Source: Monocercomonoides exilis PA203
Lineage: Eukaryota; Protista; Preaxostyla
Assembly: GCA_001643675.2 (NCBI GenBank)
Contig: LSRY02000054.1
Location: forward strand, 124,001-188,000
Direction of reading: 5' to 3'
DNA length: 64,000 bases
The notes beneath the pieces were generated by a model that worked only from the letters and a program-made list of their open reading frames with translations, made no database searches and had not been told where the DNA came from. Shown here one piece after another: positions 8,030 to 50,010 of the stretch (its first letter is position 1; each line of letters opens with the position of its first letter). The position numbers were made by a program, and so were the translations under genes.

Positions 8030-10632
8030 GATATTCTTTTCTTCATTTTGTTTTATTTCCAATTCTATAATTGCTTCGAGATCTCGTTCGGATAAAGTAT
8101 TCAATCTTTGTTTCGTGGATTACTGTCAAGGAGGAATTGTTTTCTTCATTGTCTTCTCGTTCCTTTTCTTTATCTTGGTATGCAAATTTTGTTTGTTGTT
8201 TTTGAATTTGAGCTCCTTTTTCAAATTATTTCTGTATTGATGTTTGTTCTTCGGATTGTGAACTGTAATTTGTTTCGGAATCGGATTCCACCTCAGAATC
8301 TAAATCGGACTCTGAATCAAACCCACTTTCTTCAGGTTGGAGAATAGTTGAATTGCATCTTGCTATCACGCGGGTTAGCTTGCCTGACACATCTGTTTGG
8401 ACGTAATGCTTTGTGGTTGTATTTCCTCTTGGAGAGAGTCTGGCAAACAAAGCAATTTGGTTTAGGGAATTTCCACAATCGTTTGTACAGTGATAGATGC
8501 ATGCCAAATGAGCAAGTTTGTGGACACTTCTGAATCCCTGCCTCTTGAAACATTTTCCCCGCATTTTAACAAATCCTTCTTGCAGAGAAGGTTAGATGGG
8601 TTGTTTCATTAATAAATTGAGAAGTTGCATTTGACTGAGACTCTTTGATTCTGTTTCCATGTTCCTTTGCTGAAGCGGATTGGCACGCAAGCGGCTGTTC
8701 TTTTATGAACGGGATGATAATATCTGTTCGCTTTGTTGATGTTTTTAATGATGAATCGAGTTGTATTGAATCGTCTCCAATTGTTGAATTCTGTTGGTTT
8801 ATCCTTTCCAACTCCGTAAAGCGACAGACGGAGAACAACATTCATATGGATATAGACTATTTTGTCAATTTATGAAAGTCGAGATTCCAGTTATCTCCAA
8901 GCAATGACATTTTCCACAGTTTAGTGTTTCAAATCTCTTGTTTGTCTTTTTTCTTCCTGTTTTCTGATCTTCGGAATGATTTTAATAACCTTTGTTTGAG
9001 AGCAGATTCTCCAAGGCCTCTATTGTTCAGTTATTCTGAGATGAGCAATAATGAAGCACATGTTTATCTGAGCATCGAATCCTTCGAACCTTTGTTTTTC
9101 AGGCTAATGAAAATGGAAGCACATTTTTCAACCCACTCACTCCAAGCTTCCTGTAAATCTCCGTTTCTTTCATCTTTTCATATTTCACAGAAACGCTCAT
9201 AACTATATGAAAACCCTTTCCATGTGTTTTCGGTAACGCTATTTTTGCATTCATCGATTATCCTTTCGGAATATCTTTTTGAAACAAGCATTCTCCGAAA
9301 TCATATTTCTTCTTGTGATTCAAAGGATTGATAAGGACTATTCTCATTCTGCCTTGAGGATGACTTGTTTCAGTCATTTTCATCCGCCTTCCTTTTTTCC
9401 TTCCTTCAGAACCTGGTTCTGTTCTTTCCATCTCCATTCGCAGTGCCTTGACATTCTTATCAGTAGTTCCCATATCTGCCCTCTCCAATCTGGAATCAGA
9501 AGTAGAATACGTGCTTTTTCCTCAATTGATTTTTCAATCGTTGGGACAATTAGTGGGATCGGAGGATGGGCTTAAATAACACCTCTTAGCCATGATTGCT
9601 GGAGTCAGTCCTCGTTTAGTGGACTTCCTGGACCGAACCATCTGTCCGCTTTTGTATTCCCCTTTATTGCAAACGCATCCAACGTTATTTTGAAATTGAG
9701 GTTTTCCGTGATCTCGTTTAGCTCTTCTTGTTCAATGGAGTAATTTCCCCCTCTTTTTAGCCTGGAGAGAGCATCTGCTCTGACATTCTTCGTCCCTGGC
9801 AAGTGTTGGGCTTAAATCTGAATGTTACTGTTCTGGGCAAATGTTCATATTTTAATCTTCAACTTTCTTAGGTCTGTTCGTTCATTCCATCAATTGACAT
9901 TGAAAACCGCTGTTGTATTGTCTGATCTGTTAAGAAAGCTGAAGTCTTTGTTCGCATGAAGAAGGTGTCTGAAATGGTTGAGTGTTCGATTGATTGAATT
10001 TATTCACTGCAATTCGAGCTCCGGCATCTCAACTTCCATGGAAGCGATTGATGGAAATCGTATTTCTTGTTGTTCATCTGTTGTTCCGCTCCAAAAGCTC
10101 TCTCTGATGCATCTGTCGTTTAGGTTGCTTGTAGTTGGAATATTGGACAAAGCTGTCTCGGTTTGTTCGCATTCAGTCCCGATATCCATTTTTGAACGCT
10201 CGGAAGGATTGATGGGTTGATTCTCATTTTTCCTTTCCACCCCACCTTTCTGACCATTCTGTCCAGCAGCATGAACATCGACGGAAGAAGGAGGGAAGCT
10301 CTTTGAAAACGAAGCGAGTTGCAATTAGCTTGCCAATGAAAGATGCGAAATTTCTCACTCTTGTTTGCTTGCATTTCAGAACTCGACTCCTCCATCTGTT
10401 GCATTCCATGAACAGTTCTTTCTTTCTATCTTTCTCCAAAGTTATGGCAAAGTTGGAATAATCCCTTGAATATCCGAGGAATGAAAAACGATTTGATGGT
10501 TGTATGTGGCTCTATTCCAGATTTGATTCAAATCCCAGCTTCAGGGATAGGCTTTAACTTTTTGGGCAATTCTTTTCAGGTTTCACATATCTTTATGGAG
10601 CAACACTACTTCGTCCAAATATGCGGCAGCTT
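8030..10632 (-). mobile_element. 5'-truncated, decayed DIRS-like (tyrosine-recombinase) retrotransposon: RT end, RNase H, methyltransferase-like domain, YR
   Basis: AYLDEVVLL (~10600-10630); FASFIGKLIATRF; SDNTTAVFNVN and HLPGTKNVRADALSR (RNase H); TLDAFAIKGN...AHPPIPLI...LIPDWRGQIW (DIRS MT-like); LFSVCRFTEL...FARLSPRGNTTTKHY (YR). Many stops and frameshifts. Confidence 0.85.
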
Positions 10633-10932
10633 TCACTTTTCATATTTTCCGAATGAAAACAACAATAACAAAAAGAAAGATTCAGAATGGAAAAAATTTC
10701 AACTAAAATGCAGGTGTTTGTTTTCGAAATCATAAAATTTCGATCGAGAATACTGTTTAAATGTTTTTTTCTATTATTTGTTCATGAACACAAAAAAGTG
10801 AAAATTCTAATTCGGAATATCTCTCTTTTTTTTTCTCATTTAACATAGACTTTTAATTCAATTGACATGAATTTCACATTTCAGTGATTTATTTATTTAA
10901 AAATTTTCATGTGATTTTAAATTATCAACATA

Positions 10933-11255
10933 TCGAAAAAAGTTATGATATAAAGAATATATACCCATATGTCTAAATTTTATTGAAAAATTCCTTTTGT
11001 TTAATTTTCAAATAAAGAAAAAATTTTATATTTCGATCAAATTTCTGTTCCTACTTACGAAACTTGATAAAAATGGAAATAAAAACAATGTCGAGATTGT
11101 GTTTTCATGACAGCAAAATTTGGTGAGTGGGAACAGAAATTTGATCGAAATATGAAATTTTCATTTTATTTGAAAATTAAACAAAAGGAATTATTCAAAA
11201 AAATTTTGACATATCGATGTTATTTATTTCAAGAATGAGTGATTATTATCGATAT
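10933..11255. repeat. MITE/foldback-like inverted repeat, same family as 3255-3822
   Basis: Arms 10967-11057 / 11122-11215 (aattccttttgtttaattttcaaataaa...atatttcgatcaaatttctgttcc vs ggaacagaaatttgatcgaaatat...tttatttgaaaattaaacaaaaggaatt). Similar to 3301-3377. Confidence 0.8.
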
Positions 11256-39787: not shown

Positions 39788-40735
39788 TGCGTTAAACTCG
39801 AAGAAGCTAGAGTACTCTCAGAAAGTTACAGGCAAATTATTTGAAGAAAGGACATTTGCGCGTGATGAAGCAGTGGAATCAAAAGAATAAAAAGAAGAAA
39901 TGATCGATAATCTCACAGTCTGCCTGAAGAAGACAAGCAATCAAACAAAATGCAGAAAATGCATTAGGCTTTAACAAAAATAATAAAACTCTTGCATTTA
40001 TCAGAATTTTATACACTTCATGTGAAGATCGAAATAAGGTTGACTTAACAACCAGATCATATGTTCCTGCAATTTATTTAATCGGTCGCATGTGTTGCAT
40101 TCATCAAAGCTATTGATCATGCACTCACCTGCATCTTCACCTTTCCTATTATAACGAACTCGTTCATTGCCTCTCTTTGCAAACCTGAATTTTAATTCTG
40201 CAATCATACATCTGACAAAAATCAACAATTCATTCTGCCTTTTTTTCTCTCCTCCTTGGCTCATTTTGCCTCTCTCTCCTTCACTCCATTCACTTTATTC
40301 TGCAACCTCCAAAACAGAATCTTTCAATGAACTTGATGCTCATCATTACATCTGGCTGTATCATTCCTTCCACTATTTTCTTCCTCACATTCTTATCCAT
40401 TTCAATGCGCAGCTCCACCTGAGCCTCGATCGTTTTCATCTTAACTTGAGAATCTCTCCTTTATCCATATGCTCCACAATCAATCAGTGTTTCATGTTCT
40501 GGTAAAAATTATACGAAAAGTGGCTTTTCTGTATTTGAAATTTGTTTTTCATTCGTCTTCCTCTTCTTTCTCTTCATAGTTCTACTCCGCTAGATATATT
40601 CATTCATTACAATTCGCAATGGAGCGAATCAACAAACGTAAGTTGCAAGTTTGCTCCTCGATAATGAGTATTATTTTTAATTATGGGTAGTTTGAGATCA
40701 AACTTCGCCAACAATTTAACCTCCTTTGCATTCCA

Positions 40736-41988
40736 TTGTCCACAGGAAGAATGACTCAAGATACTGTTAGAGCGCCAAATAGCGACGGCGAGGACAGAGG
40801 ATATGATCTTATTCACAGGCTATCAAGGGTAGAAAACATGATCGAAGAAATCACCAGAAGCCAAGCATGGCCAAGTCAGTCCGGAGTAGTAAGAATATTA
40901 CCAATGAGAAAGACGAAGAGGGAACGGCCAAGATGAAGATCTCTGACGAGATCAAGCGAATCTGAGTCCGAATCAGATCTTGCAGATATGATCACAAGGA
41001 AGAAACGTGGACAGCCGTGGAGGGGCAGTCGTACACGGAGTAAATGAAGAGATAGGACGAAGAGGGAAGCAGCGAGAGCGATTCCGGAAGTACAGAAAAG
41101 CGGGAAGAAGAGCAGGAAAGATCGGAAGGCTTTTTGGGAATTTTCCCAGACGAATGGCTGACGCCCAGGAGGCAGGCGGGCGAACTGAAGAGATTTATGG
41201 AGTTTTGTAAGGCCGGATAGATCAGGATATACGATGATATCTTAAACACATTTATTCCAGAGACGGAAAAGAACTTCTTCACCAGACACACTGATGCGAG
41301 TTGGAACGCCTTAGCGGTGACGGGGGTCACTGCCAAAGGAAGAAAGGACTCACCAGAAGCTGTCCGGGTTATTGAACTACTCCAACCCACTCTCAAATCG
41401 GGGTTTGAAGCTGCCAAGGCGATTGCAGCCCTAACAACAAGAGAATTGAGGAAGGCACATTTAGAAGAAGAAGAGAAAGAGCAATTGAGGGGACTCTTCT
41501 GCTCATATGCCCTGATTGCAGACTGTATCAGCCGGATTAATATACTAAAAGTTATACCCCAGTCAAACTGGGAGAATGTGAAGTGTTTCCTTGAAGGGTG
41601 AACGACCAAGGACGTCCCAGAGAGCCTGAGGAGGTTGGTGGAGAGTATCAGCTTTTTTCGTCCAGAGGGGGATGGTCCAAGGTACGGAGCATCCCCCGCT
41701 TCTCCCACAGCCTTCGGCCTTGTCGCAACCAGGAGCGGACGCCCAAGCAGGTACAGCACAGGCAGGAACGCTCAGGGCTTCGCTTACATACAACTCCAAA
41801 AGCATGGCTTCGAGGGGAGCTTCACGAATTTCAGGGAAAGAAGGAGATCAACACAGGCCCTACTGCAGCATTCCCCAGCACCAGCTAGGAGATTGGCCTC
41901 GATCACAGTTCCCCTCCCCCCAGCTCCCCCGAGGATACGGGGAGGACCAGCTACAGGCGCAGCTTCTGGATCGAGCCAATGGGCCTAG
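40736..41988 (+). pseudogene. ORF1 (gag-like) of DIRS-like element, disrupted
   Basis: Position upstream of pol, coding-like composition, broken by stops and frameshifts. No diagnostic motif recognised. Confidence 0.55.
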
Positions 41989-44400
41989 AAGAAGCGAGGG
42001 GGAAGGAGGCAGCGCTTTACTGCGAGACAGAAAGAGAAGAGAGAGAAGCAAATTACTACGAAATGAATATTCAACGAGAAACCGTAGCTCCGGGCGAGAA
42101 GCGATCAGAGATGGAAATACAGAAACAATCCGTGAATATCGGAAAGGTGGTGAGCATGCTAGACCAAGAGAATGAGAGAGAACGAGAAACCACAGAGGAT
42201 CGTGTGATGGAGAGACCGAGAGAAGAGGCGCAACACGAGGCAACGAGAACAGAAGGAGACTCCGCATATCTCCGGGTGACGAGACAGAAGAGCGAGAGGA
42301 GGAACGAGAAGATAGTTTGGAGAACTTCTGGGATTGTTATCGGGTCCCCAATTGGGAGCACTCTGGAGGAGGGCTCGAAGACAGTAGTTGCAAATATTTA
42401 CGAAGGGGAAGAGAAAACACAGATGCAGTCTGGCCACAAGACGCTAGGAGTGAAGAGGAGAACAGCGATTGGACCACTGAGGGAACCACTTCCTGGGAGA
42501 CTGGTGAACAGACTGAGCGAATGGAAGAAGATTGGGGGAGACAAACTAGTGAGCCGTGGTATAATAACTCGGTGGAGAAGTCCCCAATCCCCAATCTCAC
42601 TCGAGGAGAGAAGACACAAACAGAAGTTTCGAAGGACGACGGAGATGACGAACAATTATTTATCCCTCTTGGAGGAGGAATTGAAGGACAGAGTGATGAA
42701 GCCCGTGCAGGAGTCGGAGGGTAGTGGTTCAACCCGACATTCATGGAGATAAAGAAGAACGGAAAGTGGAGGAAGATCCTGGATTGCATGGCGTTAAACG
42801 AGGAAGTGCAGGGAAAACACTTCAAGAAGGATTCCCAGGAGAAAGTCGTGGAACTCCTGGAGGAGAACGATTGGATGACCACTCTGGATATATCGAGTGC
42901 ATATCAGCATGTAAAGGTGGACGAGCAATTCAGTCCCTATCTGTGCTTCAGCTTTCAAAGTCAATGTTACGCTTTCGTTGGGATGCCATTTGGAGCGAAA
43001 GACGCCATTAGAGTTTTCACGAAGATAATGAGACGGGCAGCCTCGTTCATCAGAGAGAAGTAGAAAGTGAAGTTAGCAATATATATGGACGACATTCTCC
43101 TCATGCACCCAGACAGGGATGCATTGAGATCGATCTCACAGGAGATAGCCCAGTTCTTGAGAAGTCTGGGCTGGATACTGTCGGAAGAGAAACTGAGTTT
43201 TTAATCCACAAGGAGTGGGGAGTTTTTGGAATGTCTGTGGAATTCGGAGAAGATGGAATTGACGCTCCAAAAGAGGAAGAGAGTGTTGCTGCTAAAGGAT
43301 GTGCGAACCTGGATAGCACTGGCAAAGAAAAGGAAGAGACATAAGACGAGGGATCTAGCAGCACTCCTCGGAAGGCTGAACTTCGTGAGGCTGTAGCACA
43401 CACCAGCGAGCTTGTGGATGAAGCGAATGCAACACGTGCTGAGGCAGGCAATAGCCAGCGTGGGCTGGAATGGAACGGTCGTATCCAACCCTATGATTTT
43501 GGGAGAATTAACACATTGGAAGAAGACCCTGAAAGAAAACAAATAGAGGTGTCTGAGGAAGAGAACAAGGCAAGCAGTACTTACAACGGAAGCTTCATGG
43601 CTGGGATAGGATGCAAAGCTAGCAGTGCTGACAGAGAGCAAAGAGGAGTTGATTTATGTACATGGAAGTTGGACACTCCAGGAGAGTGCGTTAGCGATAA
43701 ACGAGAAGAAGTCCAGAGCAGTGTTGAGGACACTAGAGAGAAAGGGAGCATGGCTGCAGCAACAGAAGATAGACCATATTTGTCTGAAGACAGTCATCAT
43801 GTTCGCGAGATGGACGATACAGAAGAAAAGAGGAGCGCCATCGCTCATTCCAACATTGAGAGCATTGAAGAAGAAACTGAACAACCTGGACATTACAATA
43901 CAAACAGAACATTTCCCGAGAATACAGAACACGGAAGCAGATGCACTCAGCCGGATGGCGAAAAAGCCGGACTATGCACTGAAGGGGGAGAAAGTCGCAG
44001 AGATATTACAAACAATCGCACCGAAAACACTAGATACAATCTTAGAACTGATTGCGCCGTTGCCCTGCGGAAGTACTTGGAGACAATCCTCCATGAGAAG
44101 GAAGAGAGAGAGAGAAACGCAAGGAAAGGAGATAGTGCAAGTCCACCCGTTCCTGAGAAATATTGGACGGGTGTTGAAAGAGAAGATGAACGAAGCTCAG
44201 AGGGAACTGACGATTCTGATTCTGCCAGACTAGCGGGGGCAGACCTGGACCCAGCTGCTGCAGCCTGGGAATTTGATAAAAACCCTGGGGACCTTTCAGG
44301 AGTGCATGATACCGGGAGCGAAGATGAGAAGGGAAGGCTGGAAATTACCACCAGGAGAGGTGATAAGCGTCACACTGGAGAAGAGAATATCCCAGGAAGG
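41979..44400 (+). pseudogene. pol of DIRS-like element: reverse transcriptase, RNase H, degenerate methyltransferase-like domain
   Basis: LPGRLVNRLSEWKKI; WFNPTF..KKNGKWRKILDC..LN; WMTTLDISSAYQHV; GMPFG; YMDDILL; TTEASWLG*DA; INEKKSRAV; HFPRIQNTEADALSR; VHPFL...LILPD*RGQTW. Frameshift at ~42720 and several stops. Confidence 0.92.
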
Positions 44401-45330
44401 GACCTCTTCTTAACATGGGGAGAATACATTGGAGCGAAGGACATAGTTGTAGCAATACTGAAAAATCAGAAGAGTTAAAGAGATACGTGGAGAGCGCTAC
44501 GAAGATTTAAGCAGTTTCTTGAAAGAGAGAGCATAGATGATACCGACACACTCACAACCAGAGATGCCAAAAGGATTATGGCAAAGTTTACCGAAATGCT
44601 TTCAAATACAAACCTGTCTGTTGGAGTGATTTATCAGACAGTTCGGAAAGTACTTGATTCCATTAACCTTTTCAGGGAGACTAAGATTGATGGGAACGAC
44701 ATTGAAATATTTCTAATAATTTATGTTAGTTAGAAGCCAAGAAGAGGCAAACGATACAAATCAATGTGGGACTTAACAATCATCACGAAGTGGGCCGAAA
44801 CTTCCTACGACGCAAAAGATATACGAACACTCCAATGGAGAGCCCTCATCTCTACTATGATTTTTGGGGCTTTAAGGCCAGCTGAGCTGGAAAGAATGAG
44901 AAGAGAGACAACGATAGTCAAGGATCATACAATACTCACTCAAGTTCGAACAAAGACGTCGGGAGGTGAGGTTATTAGAATTATAATAAATAAACACCCC
45001 AATCCACGCATTGATGCAGTAGAGGCGCTCCAACGCTGGCTGGATTATACTAAGACGATTCTTAAGGATGAACATGTGTGGTTTGACATAGAAGAGAGCA
45101 GGCCTGCAAACTTGCAGAGAATTAACGAAGAGTTAACAGCGATTCTGAGAGAGAACGGAATACCAGAAACTTTTACGGCGTACTCAATAAGACACGCTGT
45201 GATTACACACTTCGCAAGACGAGAAGGAGCGGACTGGAAGGCTATCAATGCTTATGCGAGATGGGAGCCAGGTTCGAGAGTAGCCCAGGAGTATTACACC
45301 GTGTAACCGGTACAAGACACAAATTGGATC
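44390..45330 (+). pseudogene. Tyrosine recombinase (YR) of DIRS-like element
   Basis: MIFGALRPAEL (R), RTKTS (K), YSIRHA (HxxR box with H>Y), ARWEPGSRVAQEYY (W, catalytic Y). The N-terminal part is frameshifted. Confidence 0.9.
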
Positions 45331-45894
45331 ATGGAGTCAATCGGTGGACCAGCACCCCAGAGTGGAGAAGATAACAAGCCACATAAGAGTGGAGAATCGA
45401 AGGAGGGGAGGCTGGAGATTGCAGAGGCAGATATGAAAGATTGCACCGAGGAATCACCAAAATCTGGTCTTGAAGAAGGGAAGAAACCTACGAGAAAGCG
45501 ATCAAAAAGAAGAGAGAGTCTAGGAGGGAAGAAAGAAAGAAAAGTGAAACGGTTCAGTCACGAAGCTCTACACCCCGACTACCAGGTAGTCAGAGGACAC
45601 CCTCCATAATCCCCGGCAACATCAGTGAGCTGATTGGAGAGAAGGACACAACTCCACTGAAGAAGAGAGGCAAAGATCGGAAGAAGCGTCACGGAAGAAG
45701 AACATGTCAGATGGGGAATGACACTGAAGAGGCAAGGGCCAGGCCGATGTCGCCTCAAAAATATTCTAAGAAAGGGAGGTTGTAGAGACAGAGGCAGCAC
45801 CTTCGTCCACAATCCCTCCAGACATTTGCCACACTTTATTGTGCTAGGAAGGAGGGTTTTAGATCACGTGTACTGAGACAGAAAAGATTTCGAG

Positions 45895-45990
45895 ACTCAT
45901 TATTGAGGAGCAAACCTGCTCCTTGCGTTCGTAGATTCGCTCTATTGCGAATTGATAGAACGCAGTGAGACAGGTTTGCTCCGAGATAAT
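45895..45990. repeat. Internal complementary region (ICR-like), an imperfect hairpin centred on attcgc-tctatt-gcgaat
   Basis: tgcgttc (45924) pairs with gaacgca (45958) and ggagcaaacctg (45907) pairs with caggtttgctcc (45971). The left half is the reverse complement of the element's left end. Confidence 0.85.
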
Positions 45991-46722
45991 AATAATGCGG
46001 ATGGAGGGAATCAAAGCGGCTGGGTGCGAAGGTGAACCAGAAGTTTGTGGAGAGATGACTAGAAAAAAGGGCGAGACAGAGAAGGAGAGACAGAAAGACC
46101 AACCGCCCGTAGACATTAATGCGCACCTGTAACCTGCATAGAGAAACATGAATTGAATAAAGGGTTTTAAGCACGATCTTACTCCTCTAATTGTTGTCGA
46201 ATAAGTTGAAAAGGAAGAGTCAGAATGGCCTGCACAGCGTGTGATGACCAGTCATCCTTTACTGACGCAACAGAGAAGCTGGAGGCCGAACATCATAGGC
46301 AGTTTTCTTTTCCACGCCTCGCGGAAGCGAGAGTGGTTTTTTTTTTCTGCTCCGACAGAATACTCGTCTCACCGGATCCCTGCACGGCCTGCAAAAGAGA
46401 GCTCCGAGGGGCAATGTCCCCAGCCCTCTGGTCTTCGAGACCATGGCAAAAGGCGAAGTCGGTGGTGAAGTGAAGCGGACAATTCATAGAACACTTTTTA
46501 TTATTTTACATGTTATTGTCTATATTTTCATCTCGCCCTTTTTTCCACGTCATTTTAGGGAAAGCGAAGTTTTCACTCAAACCACACATAATTTAAGATC
46601 AAACTCATTTTCTAGGAGCAGGTTTGCTCCTTGCGTTAATAGATTCGCTCTATTGCGAATTAACACCTCGAAAATAGTTATGATTTCAAATATTATCACC
46701 AATATATGAATTTTTAAAGAAA

Positions 46723-46764
46723 GACCGGGTTTTTGAAAAATTCCCGGGTTTCTGAACGATGGTA
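46723..46764. repeat. Diverged solo TIR related to the pogo-like TIR
   Basis: ccgggtttttgaaaaattcccgggtttctgaacgatggTA resembles ccgggtttcgtaaaaggtcccggttttggcaccaatggTG (39750-39789). Confidence 0.55.
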
Positions 46765-47020
46765 CTTCTTATTTTGATCGTAAAATTGGAACAAACATTT
46801 TTAGGAAAATGGATGTTGTGAAATAACTATTTCCTTTATTATATTGTTTTGATCTGATTATCAATTATTTGATTGATTTCAAAAAATTGTTTTTTTCGTA
46901 ATAGTCTGGAAAAGGAATCAACATTATTTTTAAGTATTTTTCTTTCAACAGTTATTGTCAACAAAAAACAATAACAAATGAATTACAATTTTCGTTATCG
47001 ATATGATTTATTTTTTTTGA

Positions 47021-47284
47021 ATATGGGTGACTATTTTTGAAATCATTTTTTTTCTATCAAAAATTTCGGTTCAAAAAATAACCTTGAATATTATCAAATT
47101 AACATTGGATAGTGAAAAGGCTTATTGAAGACAATTTTATCATTAATTAGGTAAAAACATTAATTTTATAAAATAATTTTCAAATTTCTTCTCTTTAGAA
47201 TTAGAAATTTCTTTTAAAAAACTGACAATTTTTGAAAACCGACACTCCGAAAAAAGTTATGATTTCAAAAATAATCACCCATAT
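47021..47284. mobile_element. ~265-bp MITE-like element
   Basis: atatgggtgactatttttgaaatcat (47021) is inverted to atgatttcaaaaataatcacccatat (47259-47284), 25/26 match. Confidence 0.65.
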
Positions 47285-47577
47285 GTTATTTTCTTGATTT
47301 CTCAAAAGACATAGTAAATTCTTCTCATTCAACAAAAATACAAATATTAAATTGCATCAACATTTATCAATAAAAAGATGAATTTGACGATTTTTTGTAG
47401 TTTTTATTGTGTTAATCAAGTGATAAATAACAAACAAGGGTAAAAATATCATTGAAAAAAACAGTTAAATAAATTGAAAAAGTGATAATAAAGCATGATA
47501 ATAATATACAAATGAATGTACACAGAAATACAAGAACAAATGATGTTTTTGAAAATAAATGATAGATCCCTTTAAAA

Positions 47578-50010
47578 TCATTCATTCATTTCTTGTTCCT
47601 TATTGTCGTTATATTCATTTCTCGATTTCCTTTTCTTTACAACAACAACAACAATCACAATCACAACAACAGCTGCCACAACAACAACCATCGGCACAAC
47701 AATAGCAACAATGATCCCTATTTTATTCTTTTTGTTTTGATCTTTCAGTTTCTCTTGTCTCACTTTCACATACTTCTCATACACATCCTCAGGCTCTGAT
47801 TCTGCATCTTTTGCTCCCTCGATCCACCCAGATGTTGATTCATCATAATCATTCGCAAACTCAAAGGCATCTTCTTGTTTGCAGAACTCTTCGAAGTCTG
47901 GGGCAATGATAAGCAGAGATGTTGTTTTCGAGCCAGCTGTGTTTGAGCTGTCAATCTCCAGGTTGTGTTCTGATGGGAGTTGCAGATTCGATGTTGCCTT
48001 GGGCATGTCAATGAATATTGCTCCTGATTTCCCTTCTGGTGCTGAACATGACTTGAATGAACATTTGCTTGACCTTCCAATGGCCACTCTTGATTCTTTT
48101 GAACTGAGGGTGATATCCAACCCTGCTGCTGCTCCTTTCTCCGATTTCACTTCCTGAACATTCAATCCTTCGATTGAAACCTTCGAAGATGAATTGCTCC
48201 CATCATCGATGCTGATTGCTGCTCCACTTTCCACATTCACTTTGCTGATGTCCATTCCACTCAATGACACTTCACGGGCTCCAGAAAATGAAAATGGTGA
48301 TGATGAGAATGTCACAAATGAGGTTTCATCTGTGCATTTCACTGTGTCCATTTCCACACTTCCAGATGTCACGCTCACAAGACTGCTTGCCAAGGGGCTG
48401 TTTCCATCAGCATTTGAATTCATTCCTTCTTGTGATTGTGATCCAATTCTGACAAATCGACATGTTGATATCTTCAATGATATTGAACCTGATCCTGCAC
48501 TGATTAATGAGTTCCAATTCTTTTCTGTTGAAGAGAATTGGAATGCCAAATACTGGAATTCCACAGTTTTCTGACAAGAAAAGAGTATTGATGAAACAGA
48601 AACATCACAATTAATGGAAACTTCTCTATTTCCTTCTCCGTTGTCATTCACTCCTTCAATTGCTATTCCACTGTTAATGCTGAAACTAATGTCTTCTGCT
48701 TTGATTGGATCTGCAGTTTTGACAACGTCAATGAAACATTTCCCATTCTTTTCCAAGAAATCATAAGCTTCCTTCATGCTGTTGATTGCCGAATTAACAT
48801 CGATTCCATTTACCTTCCCTCCTTTCTTCACAAATGCTCTTGTCATATTAACTGGCTTTTGAGGAATGGGATCAAAAAATGTGCTAATGAAATCACATTC
48901 TTTTTTTGTTTTATTGTCATAACCAACAACAAACCACAAATTATCATCTCGTGTGTAATCAGCTGCAAAACTTTCCCTCATTGCATCCGCTATGTCATTG
49001 AACAAAGAATCATTTTCCATTTCAATATATAACCCAGTACTTCTCTTCACTCCATTATATTCAGATGAGCAATTCTGAAAAGCCAGATTCTTTCCATTTG
49101 TTGGCCATTTTAATTGAGAGGCTGATGCTATATTTGGCATACGCAAATAGATTCCACCAGATTTGGAATAGAATCCACTGCTGCTGCATGAGATGAAAGA
49201 TGTCACACCTCCATTTCCAACTGTGAACGTATTATCATAGGGATTGTTGTAAATGAAAAATATTCCATAATCTTCTGTTTGATACTCAAAGAACGTGCAA
49301 CCGTTCATGGTGACATCCATATTGATTTCATATCCTCCACGGATATAAACAGTTGACCCACCACTTGATATTTTCTTCAAAGTCACATTCGTCAGTGAAA
49401 CTGTTTTAATATTCTGTATGGAAAATACATAATTGGAAAATGCAACTGCAACATTGTCGTCGACACACTCAACTGAATCCATCAACAGATTTTCACCACT
49501 CATGCGCACAATACAATAATCCACAGTTCCACCATTTGATGGTTGACGAATAAATTGGCAGTTATAAAATGTGAGATTCCCACTTCCATCAATCAAAGCA
49601 TCTTCACTTGAGGATCCACCTAATGACATCGGAAAATGGAATGACAAATATTCAAATTCTGCATCTTCGTTGCAATAAAATAGAACTCCGCCTGGATTCA
49701 CATTGCAATCCATTGAAACCATTGTATTTCCATTTCCGTCGTTGTTTATTCCTTCAATGCTGATTCCTTGCTTTTTGTCGAACGTAATTTTCTCAGTTGA
49801 AAATGCAGATGTATCAATGATAACATAGATCTTGCATGCGTGGCCATTTCCCAGCAGATCATATGCACTTTTCAATGATTTCCTTTCCTGACCGATCTCT
49901 GTGCCAGTGTGGCTGTCATCTCCCGTTTGTTTGATGCAAACTTCATATGGTTTTCCTTCATCCAATTCTTGTGAAATTGCGAGTGTGAAAGTCAGAAAAA
50001 CTGAGAGCAT
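47578..50010 (-). CDS. Type I membrane surface protein with two tandem ~365-aa beta-helix-like domains
   Basis: Likely start MLSVFLTFTLAISQE (ATG 50010). Internal duplication (SLKSAYDLL...GISIEGINNDGNGNTMVSMDCNV vs SMKEAYDFL...GIAIEGVNDNGEGNREVSINCDV). C-terminal Val-rich TM followed by KKRKSR. Confidence 0.88.
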   Translation of the reverse strand: MLSVFLTFTLAISQELDEGKPYEVCIKQTGDDSHTGTEIGQERKSLKSAYDLLGNGHACKIYVIIDTSAFSTEKITFDKKQGISIEGINNDGNGNTMVSMDCNVNPGGVLFYCNEDAEFEYLSFHFPMSLGGSSSEDALIDGSGNLTFYNCQFIRQPSNGGTVDYCIVRMSGENLLMDSVECVDDNVAVAFSNYVFSIQNIKTVSLTNVTLKKISSGGSTVYIRGGYEINMDVTMNGCTFFEYQTEDYGIFFIYNNPYDNTFTVGNGGVTSFISCSSSGFYSKSGGIYLRMPNIASASQLKWPTNGKNLAFQNCSSEYNGVKRSTGLYIEMENDSLFNDIADAMRESFAADYTRDDNLWFVVGYDNKTKKECDFISTFFDPIPQKPVNMTRAFVKKGGKVNGIDVNSAINSMKEAYDFLEKNGKCFIDVVKTADPIKAEDISFSINSGIAIEGVNDNGEGNREVSINCDVSVSSILFSCQKTVEFQYLAFQFSSTEKNWNSLISAGSGSISLKISTCRFVRIGSQSQEGMNSNADGNSPLASSLVSVTSGSVEMDTVKCTDETSFVTFSSSPFSFSGAREVSLSGMDISKVNVESGAAISIDDGSNSSSKVSIEGLNVQEVKSEKGAAAGLDITLSSKESRVAIGRSSKCSFKSCSAPEGKSGAIFIDMPKATSNLQLPSEHNLEIDSSNTAGSKTTSLLIIAPDFEEFCKQEDAFEFANDYDESTSGWIEGAKDAESEPEDVYEKYVKVRQEKLKDQNKKNKIGIIVAIVVPMVVVVAAVVVIVIVVVVVKKRKSRNEYNDNKEQEMNE

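Follow-up and report, generated by a model that had tools for sequence, protein, structure and literature searches.

In a 64,000-nucleotide stretch of the Monocercomonoides exilis PA203 genome (contig LSRY02000054.1, positions 124,001 to 188,000 of the forward strand; hereafter the window), positions 40610-46661 very probably represent one old, frameshifted copy of an abundant family of DIRS1-like tyrosine-recombinase retrotransposons that follows the published DIRS1-like design. The palindrome ATTCGC-N6-GCGAAT, which occurs three times in this copy, is the family's 19-nt left extension. A normal element therefore carries it twice, once at the left tip and once, as the complement, at the apex of the hairpin formed by the internal complementary region (ICR). 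The third palindrome, at the right end of the window copy, is a single historical accident, in a tip that arose once. An earlier reading of the window, made from the sequence only, had suggested that the palindrome may be the crossover site of the recombinase, comparable to loxP or att. Host and element sequences meet instead at a 2-3-nt junction, CAA, with whose last A the outer palindrome arm begins. The published M. exilis genome paper leaves most repeats unclassified and does not mention DIRS (PMC8767320).

The genome searched comprises 82,301,135 bases in 101 contigs, in which we sampled 30 loci with the right-end module, another 30 with a probe extending further along the right end, and 14 full-length regions. 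Of the loci matched by the module, only two were not left ends of related copies, read in reverse. The window copy is collinear with 11 full-length copies of 5.9-6.5 kb, to which it is 78-83% identical. Its own open reading frames (ORFs) are broken into fragments, and the gag, pol and tyrosine recombinase (YR) frames of a relative align with it by tblastn over 40712-45519. DIRS1-like elements combine a reverse transcriptase (RT) with RNase H, both related to those of Ty3/gypsy, and use a tyrosine recombinase instead of a DDE integrase. Pfam detects all three domains in L034, the least damaged relative (RVT_1, E = 6.7e-28; RT_RNaseH, E = 1.1e-08; Phage_integrase, E = 1.7e-07), and RVT_1 and Phage_integrase in the window copy itself. 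In L034 and L033 the YR frame stays open across pol, in a long overlap that gives frames of 1431-1482 aa. A genome-wide scan with PF00589 lists 98 recombinase matches, clearly different families among them. These domains, together with the architecture of the termini and ICR described below, bear out the assignment to DIRS-type tyrosine-recombinase retroelements that had been proposed from the sequence.

The anatomy of the ends is clearest in L034. Complementarity is 100% both between its first 60 nt and the left ICR half and between its last 39 nt and the right one; these halves overlap by 3 nt, TTG, and the conserved part of its inverted terminal repeats (ITRs) spans 47 nt at 94%. The same two-part region, located 3′ of the recombinase gene and with each half complementary to one terminus, is present in the 11 full-length copies, confirming that the internal module is the ICR. 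In these copies, the left terminus (lTer) matches the reverse complement of the left ICR half (lICR) at 54-61 of 62 positions, and the segment shared in complementary form between the right terminus (rTer) and its ICR half (rICR), 39 nt long in L034, is exact or has one mismatch in 10 of 11. Subfamily-specific variants are common to each terminus and its ICR half, such that the two co-vary. In L039 and in the window copy, lTer and lICR are of different subfamily types, the spacer and the next 5 nt disagreeing, which suggests that these are mosaic copies produced by recombination between subfamilies.

Canonical left ends start with (N)AATTCGC..., and canonical right ends finish with ...CACTGCGTTCTATCAA and carry no palindrome. 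The 19-nt palindrome is thus a terminal extension found in lTer and lICR and missing from canonical rTer, and each of the 11 other full-length copies has two of it, one at the left tip and the other within the ICR. The 3-bp circular junction of the ICR, TTG, has its complement at both ends of the element ((C)AA on the left, CAA on the right), with no target-site duplication. The termini had been described as very short and atypical of DIRS elements. With an ITR of about 70-100 bp plus the 19-nt left extension, they fall inside the published range of 66-316 bp (PMC3266345). Genome-wide, the palindrome was found at 173 sites, compared with 2 in the control, and the ICR junction motif at 73. The listed palindrome sites include 15 pairs in opposite orientation, 3.7-7.5 kb apart, with matching spacers in 11 of the 15, and none of these listed sites has a partner in the same orientation at about 700 bp.

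The boundaries between element and host were mapped at both ends. Among 27 independent left ends, the arm bases are kept in 26-27, 22 have A at position -1, and position -2 varies (C in 9); the boundary lies one base outside the palindrome arm in all 27 and within the N6 spacer in none. The 28 right-end loci include 22 independent canonical right ends, and 21-22 of these have AA next to TATC, beyond which comes variable A-rich flank. The flanks have nothing in common beyond this AA, which the ICR carries only once. The CAA junction lies 6-7 bp away from the N6 spacer. A crossover within the spacer would predict boundaries within the palindrome, which were not seen, and with the crossover placed at the outer edge of the arm the palindrome is at most a neighbouring binding or folding element rather than the crossover core. 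The sequence-only reading was right that the arms are conserved and adjoin the left boundary of the element; it does not hold at the right boundary, where the 22 canonical ends stop at ...TATCAA, and the element/flank boundaries that it had proposed to map relative to the spacer lie at the CAA/AA junction, at the outer edge of one arm. We also considered a crossover region of 7-9 bp extending from the AA. Under this model TTCGC would be missing from left ends and added to right ends; it was rejected, as these were found at 0/27 and 0/28 loci, respectively.

In the window copy, 40610-40669 is complementary to 45895-45954 at 87%, the outer arms 40611-40708 and 46564-46661 form an inverted repeat of 98 nt at 79%, and 45895-45953 and 46603-46661 are direct repeats of 85% identity, 708 bp apart. 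Exact matches to ATTCGC-N6-GCGAAT in the 64-kb window start at 40612, 45935 and 46643 only (0.18 expected; 0 of 100 shuffles reach three), with the spacer AATGGA in the left copy and TCTATT in the other two. The left copy folds into a 6-bp stem with a 6-nt loop. Folded as single-stranded DNA, 45890-45998 forms a single long hairpin that carries the palindrome at its tip (-28.2 kcal/mol; z = -8.7, equalled by 0 of 200 shuffles), and lICR and rICR overlap at TTG, 45952-45954. For this one copy, everything first reported about the module copies, the palindrome at three sites, its spacers, the 708-bp direct repeats and the hairpin of about 95 nt around the ICR is correct. As a description of the termini of the family, the three-palindrome arrangement fails, given the two palindromes per element in the other full-length copies.

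The third palindrome is limited to one lineage of sequence. Of 40 right ends scored, 38 align only up to the canonical tip ...TATCAA, the exceptions being the window copy and C52:233239-233394, and 26 of 28 right ends lack the palindrome in a second tally. The C52 locus is not an independent insertion, since it is a duplicate that contains the element's final 157 bp and its flank, and a 20-mer specific to the aberrant tip occurs at two places in the genome only, the window and this duplicate. The inverted segmental duplication has one breakpoint within the DIRS right ITR, and its homology reaches the edge of the fetched locus. In the window copy, homology with canonical right ends ceases about 40 nt short of the element's end, while its own ICR predicts a canonical right end, as in its closest relatives. 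The right tip agrees with the lICR of this same copy in 33 of 35 positions, stopping precisely at the junction base. A hairpin, GGAGCA/TGCTCC with a 4-6-nt loop, is exactly inverted between the ICR (45906-45923) and the right tip (46614-46631); the flipped loop was found in none of 27 left termini and none of the 24 lICRs placed in right-end loci. This flip is a single minute inversion at the hairpin, and a regular flip/flop of GGAGCA-loop-TGCTCC was rejected, the flip being limited to the window right tip and its duplicate. Reading through the junction was likewise rejected as the source of the tip, which it fails to match in spacer orientation and in the 5 nt ahead of the palindrome; lICR, in contrast, fits.

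The outer ~50 nt of the right terminus was very probably replaced by sequence of the lICR or inverted-left-terminus type, at a time before the inverted segmental duplication. This most likely came about either when a nearby inverted copy recombined with the element across the common ITR, which would have been followed by a deletion, or by conversion, possibly mis-templating, from the ICR. A stricter form of the latter, in which the third palindrome is a product of replication, the left ICR arm having wrongly templated the right end with no later rearrangement of the genome, is rather doubtful. The near-complete match to the copy's own lICR, with its stop exactly at the junction base, is in its favor, and the two ICR arms are alike, so mis-annealing is conceivable. 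However, the event occurred once among at least 40 right ends, and the right boundary resembles an ordinary inverted junction between left end and flank, as expected from recombination with an inverted neighbour; the flipped hairpin loop of the tip is predicted by neither model.

The same loci bear on the proposal that the palindrome is a loxP- or att-like core with the N6 spacer as the crossover region, its three copies allowing inversion of the body (left x internal or left x right) and excision of a 708-bp circle (internal x right). As a sequence pattern, the inverted 6-bp arms around an asymmetric 6-bp spacer do recall loxP, FRT and phage att sites; the arms are invariant across subfamilies, the spacer varies, and the palindrome touches the left boundary of the element. 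In those systems, however, the exchange takes place within the spacer between partners sharing it, whereas the exchange point of the M. exilis family lies outside the arm, at no left end in the spacer, and its partners share 2-3 nt only: unrelated targets with nothing but AA in common cannot use a 6-bp homologous spacer. Canonical right ends, moreover, offer no palindrome to recombine, and the one at the right end of the window copy, which excision of the circle needs, goes back to one historical event. The predicted products were not seen either. All 27 left-end loci run collinearly into gag, all 28 right-end loci and all 11 full-length copies are collinear, and the distance from ICR to right end is constant at 673-700 bp in the 24 right-end loci in which the ICR motif was placed; in these 27 left-end, 28 right-end and 11 full-length loci, we found neither an inverted body nor a copy lacking the segment between ICR and right end. 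We therefore regard a loxP-like core, and with it body inversion and the 708-bp circle, as highly improbable.

What the palindrome does at the left tip is a separate question from where the crossover lies. Its arms are the same in every subfamily, apart from isolated point mutations here and there in dead copies, in contrast to the variable spacer and the 5 nt after the palindrome; judged from this pattern of conservation, the arms are therefore probably functional. Two roles, one as a duplex site and one as a single-strand hairpin, are roughly equally likely, and we propose each of them tentatively. The palindrome may be a double-stranded site, putatively bound by the recombinase and positioning it beside the CAA crossover, as an accessory or a one-sided core element. 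Both the invariance of the arms next to a variable spacer and the direct contact of the palindrome with the crossover dinucleotide are consistent with such a candidate site, but known tyrosine recombinases cut at the spacer edges between bound arms and not outside an arm, and there are no compensatory changes in the arms that could part binding from pairing. Alternatively, the palindrome may be a hairpin in single-stranded nucleic acid through which the otherwise unpaired left extension pairs with itself; the continuous hairpin formed in this way by the ICR and junction would serve the restoration of complementary DNA (cDNA) ends or be the recombinase substrate itself. Here the evidence comes from the predicted folds, namely the ICR hairpin with the palindrome as its apical stem and a pair of small hairpins at the left tip (z about -3.4 to -3.9), as well as from the single-stranded cDNA intermediates of DIRS-1 (PMC7192593). 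Yet arms that never vary leave no covariation in the family, and pairing follows from palindromy itself, so that a duplex site predicts it equally well.

Self-pairing of the left extension allows the ICR, and equally the junction of right end and left end, to fold into one continuous hairpin, in which the crossover nucleotides fall at the discontinuity separating apical stem from ITR stem. The architecture itself dictates this position, which is no independent evidence. Tyrosine recombinases act on a folded single strand at integron attC sites and in CTX phage. As a speculation to which we give little weight, the recombinase of this family might act on a folded single-stranded junction or ICR, with CAA at the helix break. 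If true, such a substrate would explain why only 2-3 nt are common with the target, why the target is not duplicated and why DIRS-1 cDNA is single-stranded.

The remaining steps of the cycle can be proposed by analogy with the DIRS-1 model and experiments in Dictyostelium, where the ICR is essential for retrotransposition (PMC7192593). The ICR would template the restoration of the ends and specify the junction between right end and left end, predicted to read ...TATCAATTCGC... with a single AA, and the recombinase would cross this junction with an AA-containing target, leaving no target duplication. The positions of the features in the window copy are collected in Table 1.

Table 1. Features of the DIRS1-like copy and of the adjoining duplicated segment (window coordinates)
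Feature	Position	Strand	Description
Entire degenerate DIRS1-like copy	40610-46661	+	~6.05 kb; collinear with 11 full-length family copies
Left terminus (lTer)	40610-40708	+	CAA at 40610-40612, 19-nt left extension, then ITR; inverted repeat with 46564-46661
Palindrome copy 1, ATTCGC AATGGA GCGAAT	40612-40629	+	Forms the left extension; no counterpart in canonical right termini
Reverse transcriptase fragment	42743-43063	+	Pfam RVT_1, E = 2.8e-10
Tyrosine recombinase catalytic domain fragment	44764-45306	+	Pfam Phage_integrase, E = 1.4e-10; the genome-wide PF00589 scan matches the same spot
ICR	45895-45990	+	45895-45954, lICR (lTer in reverse complement); 45952-45990, rICR (canonical right terminus in reverse complement)
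Palindrome copy 2	45935-45952	+	Tip of the ICR hairpin
Right terminus	46564-46661	+	Inner part a normal right ITR; outer ~50 nt (~46612-46661) aberrant, resembling lICR/inverted lTer
Palindrome copy 3	46643-46660	+	Limited to the window copy and its duplicate
Segment duplicated in inverted orientation	46505-48015		C52:231739-233394 (L002), ~62 kb downstream on the same contig; 94-95% identity by local blastn

Many traits of the family recur in published DIRS1-like elements (PMC3266345): RT-RNase H is combined with a tyrosine recombinase, the YR frame overlaps pol over a long stretch, the ITRs have one divergent and one conserved portion, the ICR consists of two parts that overlap on the 3 nt of a circular junction, both ends carry the same trinucleotide without target duplication, and an extension is complementary only to its ICR; left as well as right extensions are described for this group. 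The M. exilis sizes, with an ICR of 60 + 39 nt, a left extension of 19 nt and elements of 5.9-6.5 kb, lie within the published ranges. Elements with a left extension only are known, namely AcasDIRS1 and AmDIRS1 (Piednoel et al. 2011, PMC3266345), and left extensions have been reported only in fungi and Amoebozoa (PMC3266345). The M. exilis family differs in its host, an oxymonad (Metamonada), in a junction that reads CAA/TTG in coding orientation compared with the common NTT/AAT, in a left extension that is a perfect 6+6 palindrome capping the ICR hairpin, and in a pol whose methyltransferase domain is without Pfam support. Dictyostelium DIRS-1 (Cappello model; Malicki et al. 2020, PMC7192593) likewise has non-identical inverted termini whose outer sequences are adjacent in an ICR near the right end; it differs in having terminal repeats of about 300 bp, a right extension and an ICR of 33 + 55 nt, whereas the M. 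exilis family is known as sequence alone. PAT-like and Ngaro elements are also tyrosine-recombinase retroelements, and the direct repeat formed by lICR and the right tip in the window superficially recalls their split direct repeats. The termini of the M. exilis family are inverted, however, and carry no split direct repeats, the sole direct repeat being this pair specific to the window copy.

Several points weigh against this account of the region. The methyltransferase-like domain, expected at the C-terminus of DIRS1-like pol, is one of them: the 188-aa tail of pol gave no Pfam match even at E = 5, and in a protein atlas this tail falls into Preaxostyla clusters, one of which has PF05869 (Dam) in 12% of its members, a weak lead. 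The steps of replication and integration are predicted for this family by analogy with Dictyostelium DIRS-1 and with comparative studies. That AA is present once in the target is deduced from the AA at both ends set against the one in the ICR, with no empty site recovered. Either of the two routes given above may have produced the chimeric right tip. Finally, each search scored 40 of 221-306 candidate ends, so that rare variants could be missed.

Other observations concern the distribution of the family and the surroundings of the window copy. On C1, two copies in opposite orientation (L018/L019 and L064/L065; C1:236718-242841 and C1:258967-265091) have identical flanks on both sides, and correspond to a whole element duplicated with its surroundings as an inverted pair about 16 kb apart. 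In L061, a second left terminus of the same family (2626-2728) lies about 900 bp downstream of a right terminus; thus, copies cluster. One ICR junction motif (G000:C60:28-46) is found 28 bases from a contig end, which places a DIRS copy at an assembly break. Within the window, a degraded retroelement pol remnant at about 9455-10657 on the minus strand is 24-38% identical to the DIRS family pol by tblastn, and neither intact, usable ORFs nor ITR/ICR termini were recognisable in it. Close by, 10952-11065 and 11116-11229 form a 114-nt inverted repeat (84%, 50-nt gap). The right flank of the element contains a short AT-rich repeat family at 46663-46713, 47242-47292 and 47021-47053 (direct repeats at 82%, inverted at 85-88%), which looks like a family of miniature inverted-repeat transposable elements.

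Taken together, the geometry of three palindromes is an accident of one dead copy, and it is silent on whether DIRS recombinases invert elements or excise mini-circles. The analysis provides a copy-supported map of the ends, the ICR and the crossover point for a DIRS1-like family in an oxymonad. To our knowledge, the choice of sites by DIRS recombinases and the way they cut have not been examined experimentally, and the junction (...TATC AA TTCGC...), together with the invariant palindromic left extension, offers concrete substrates for testing both.

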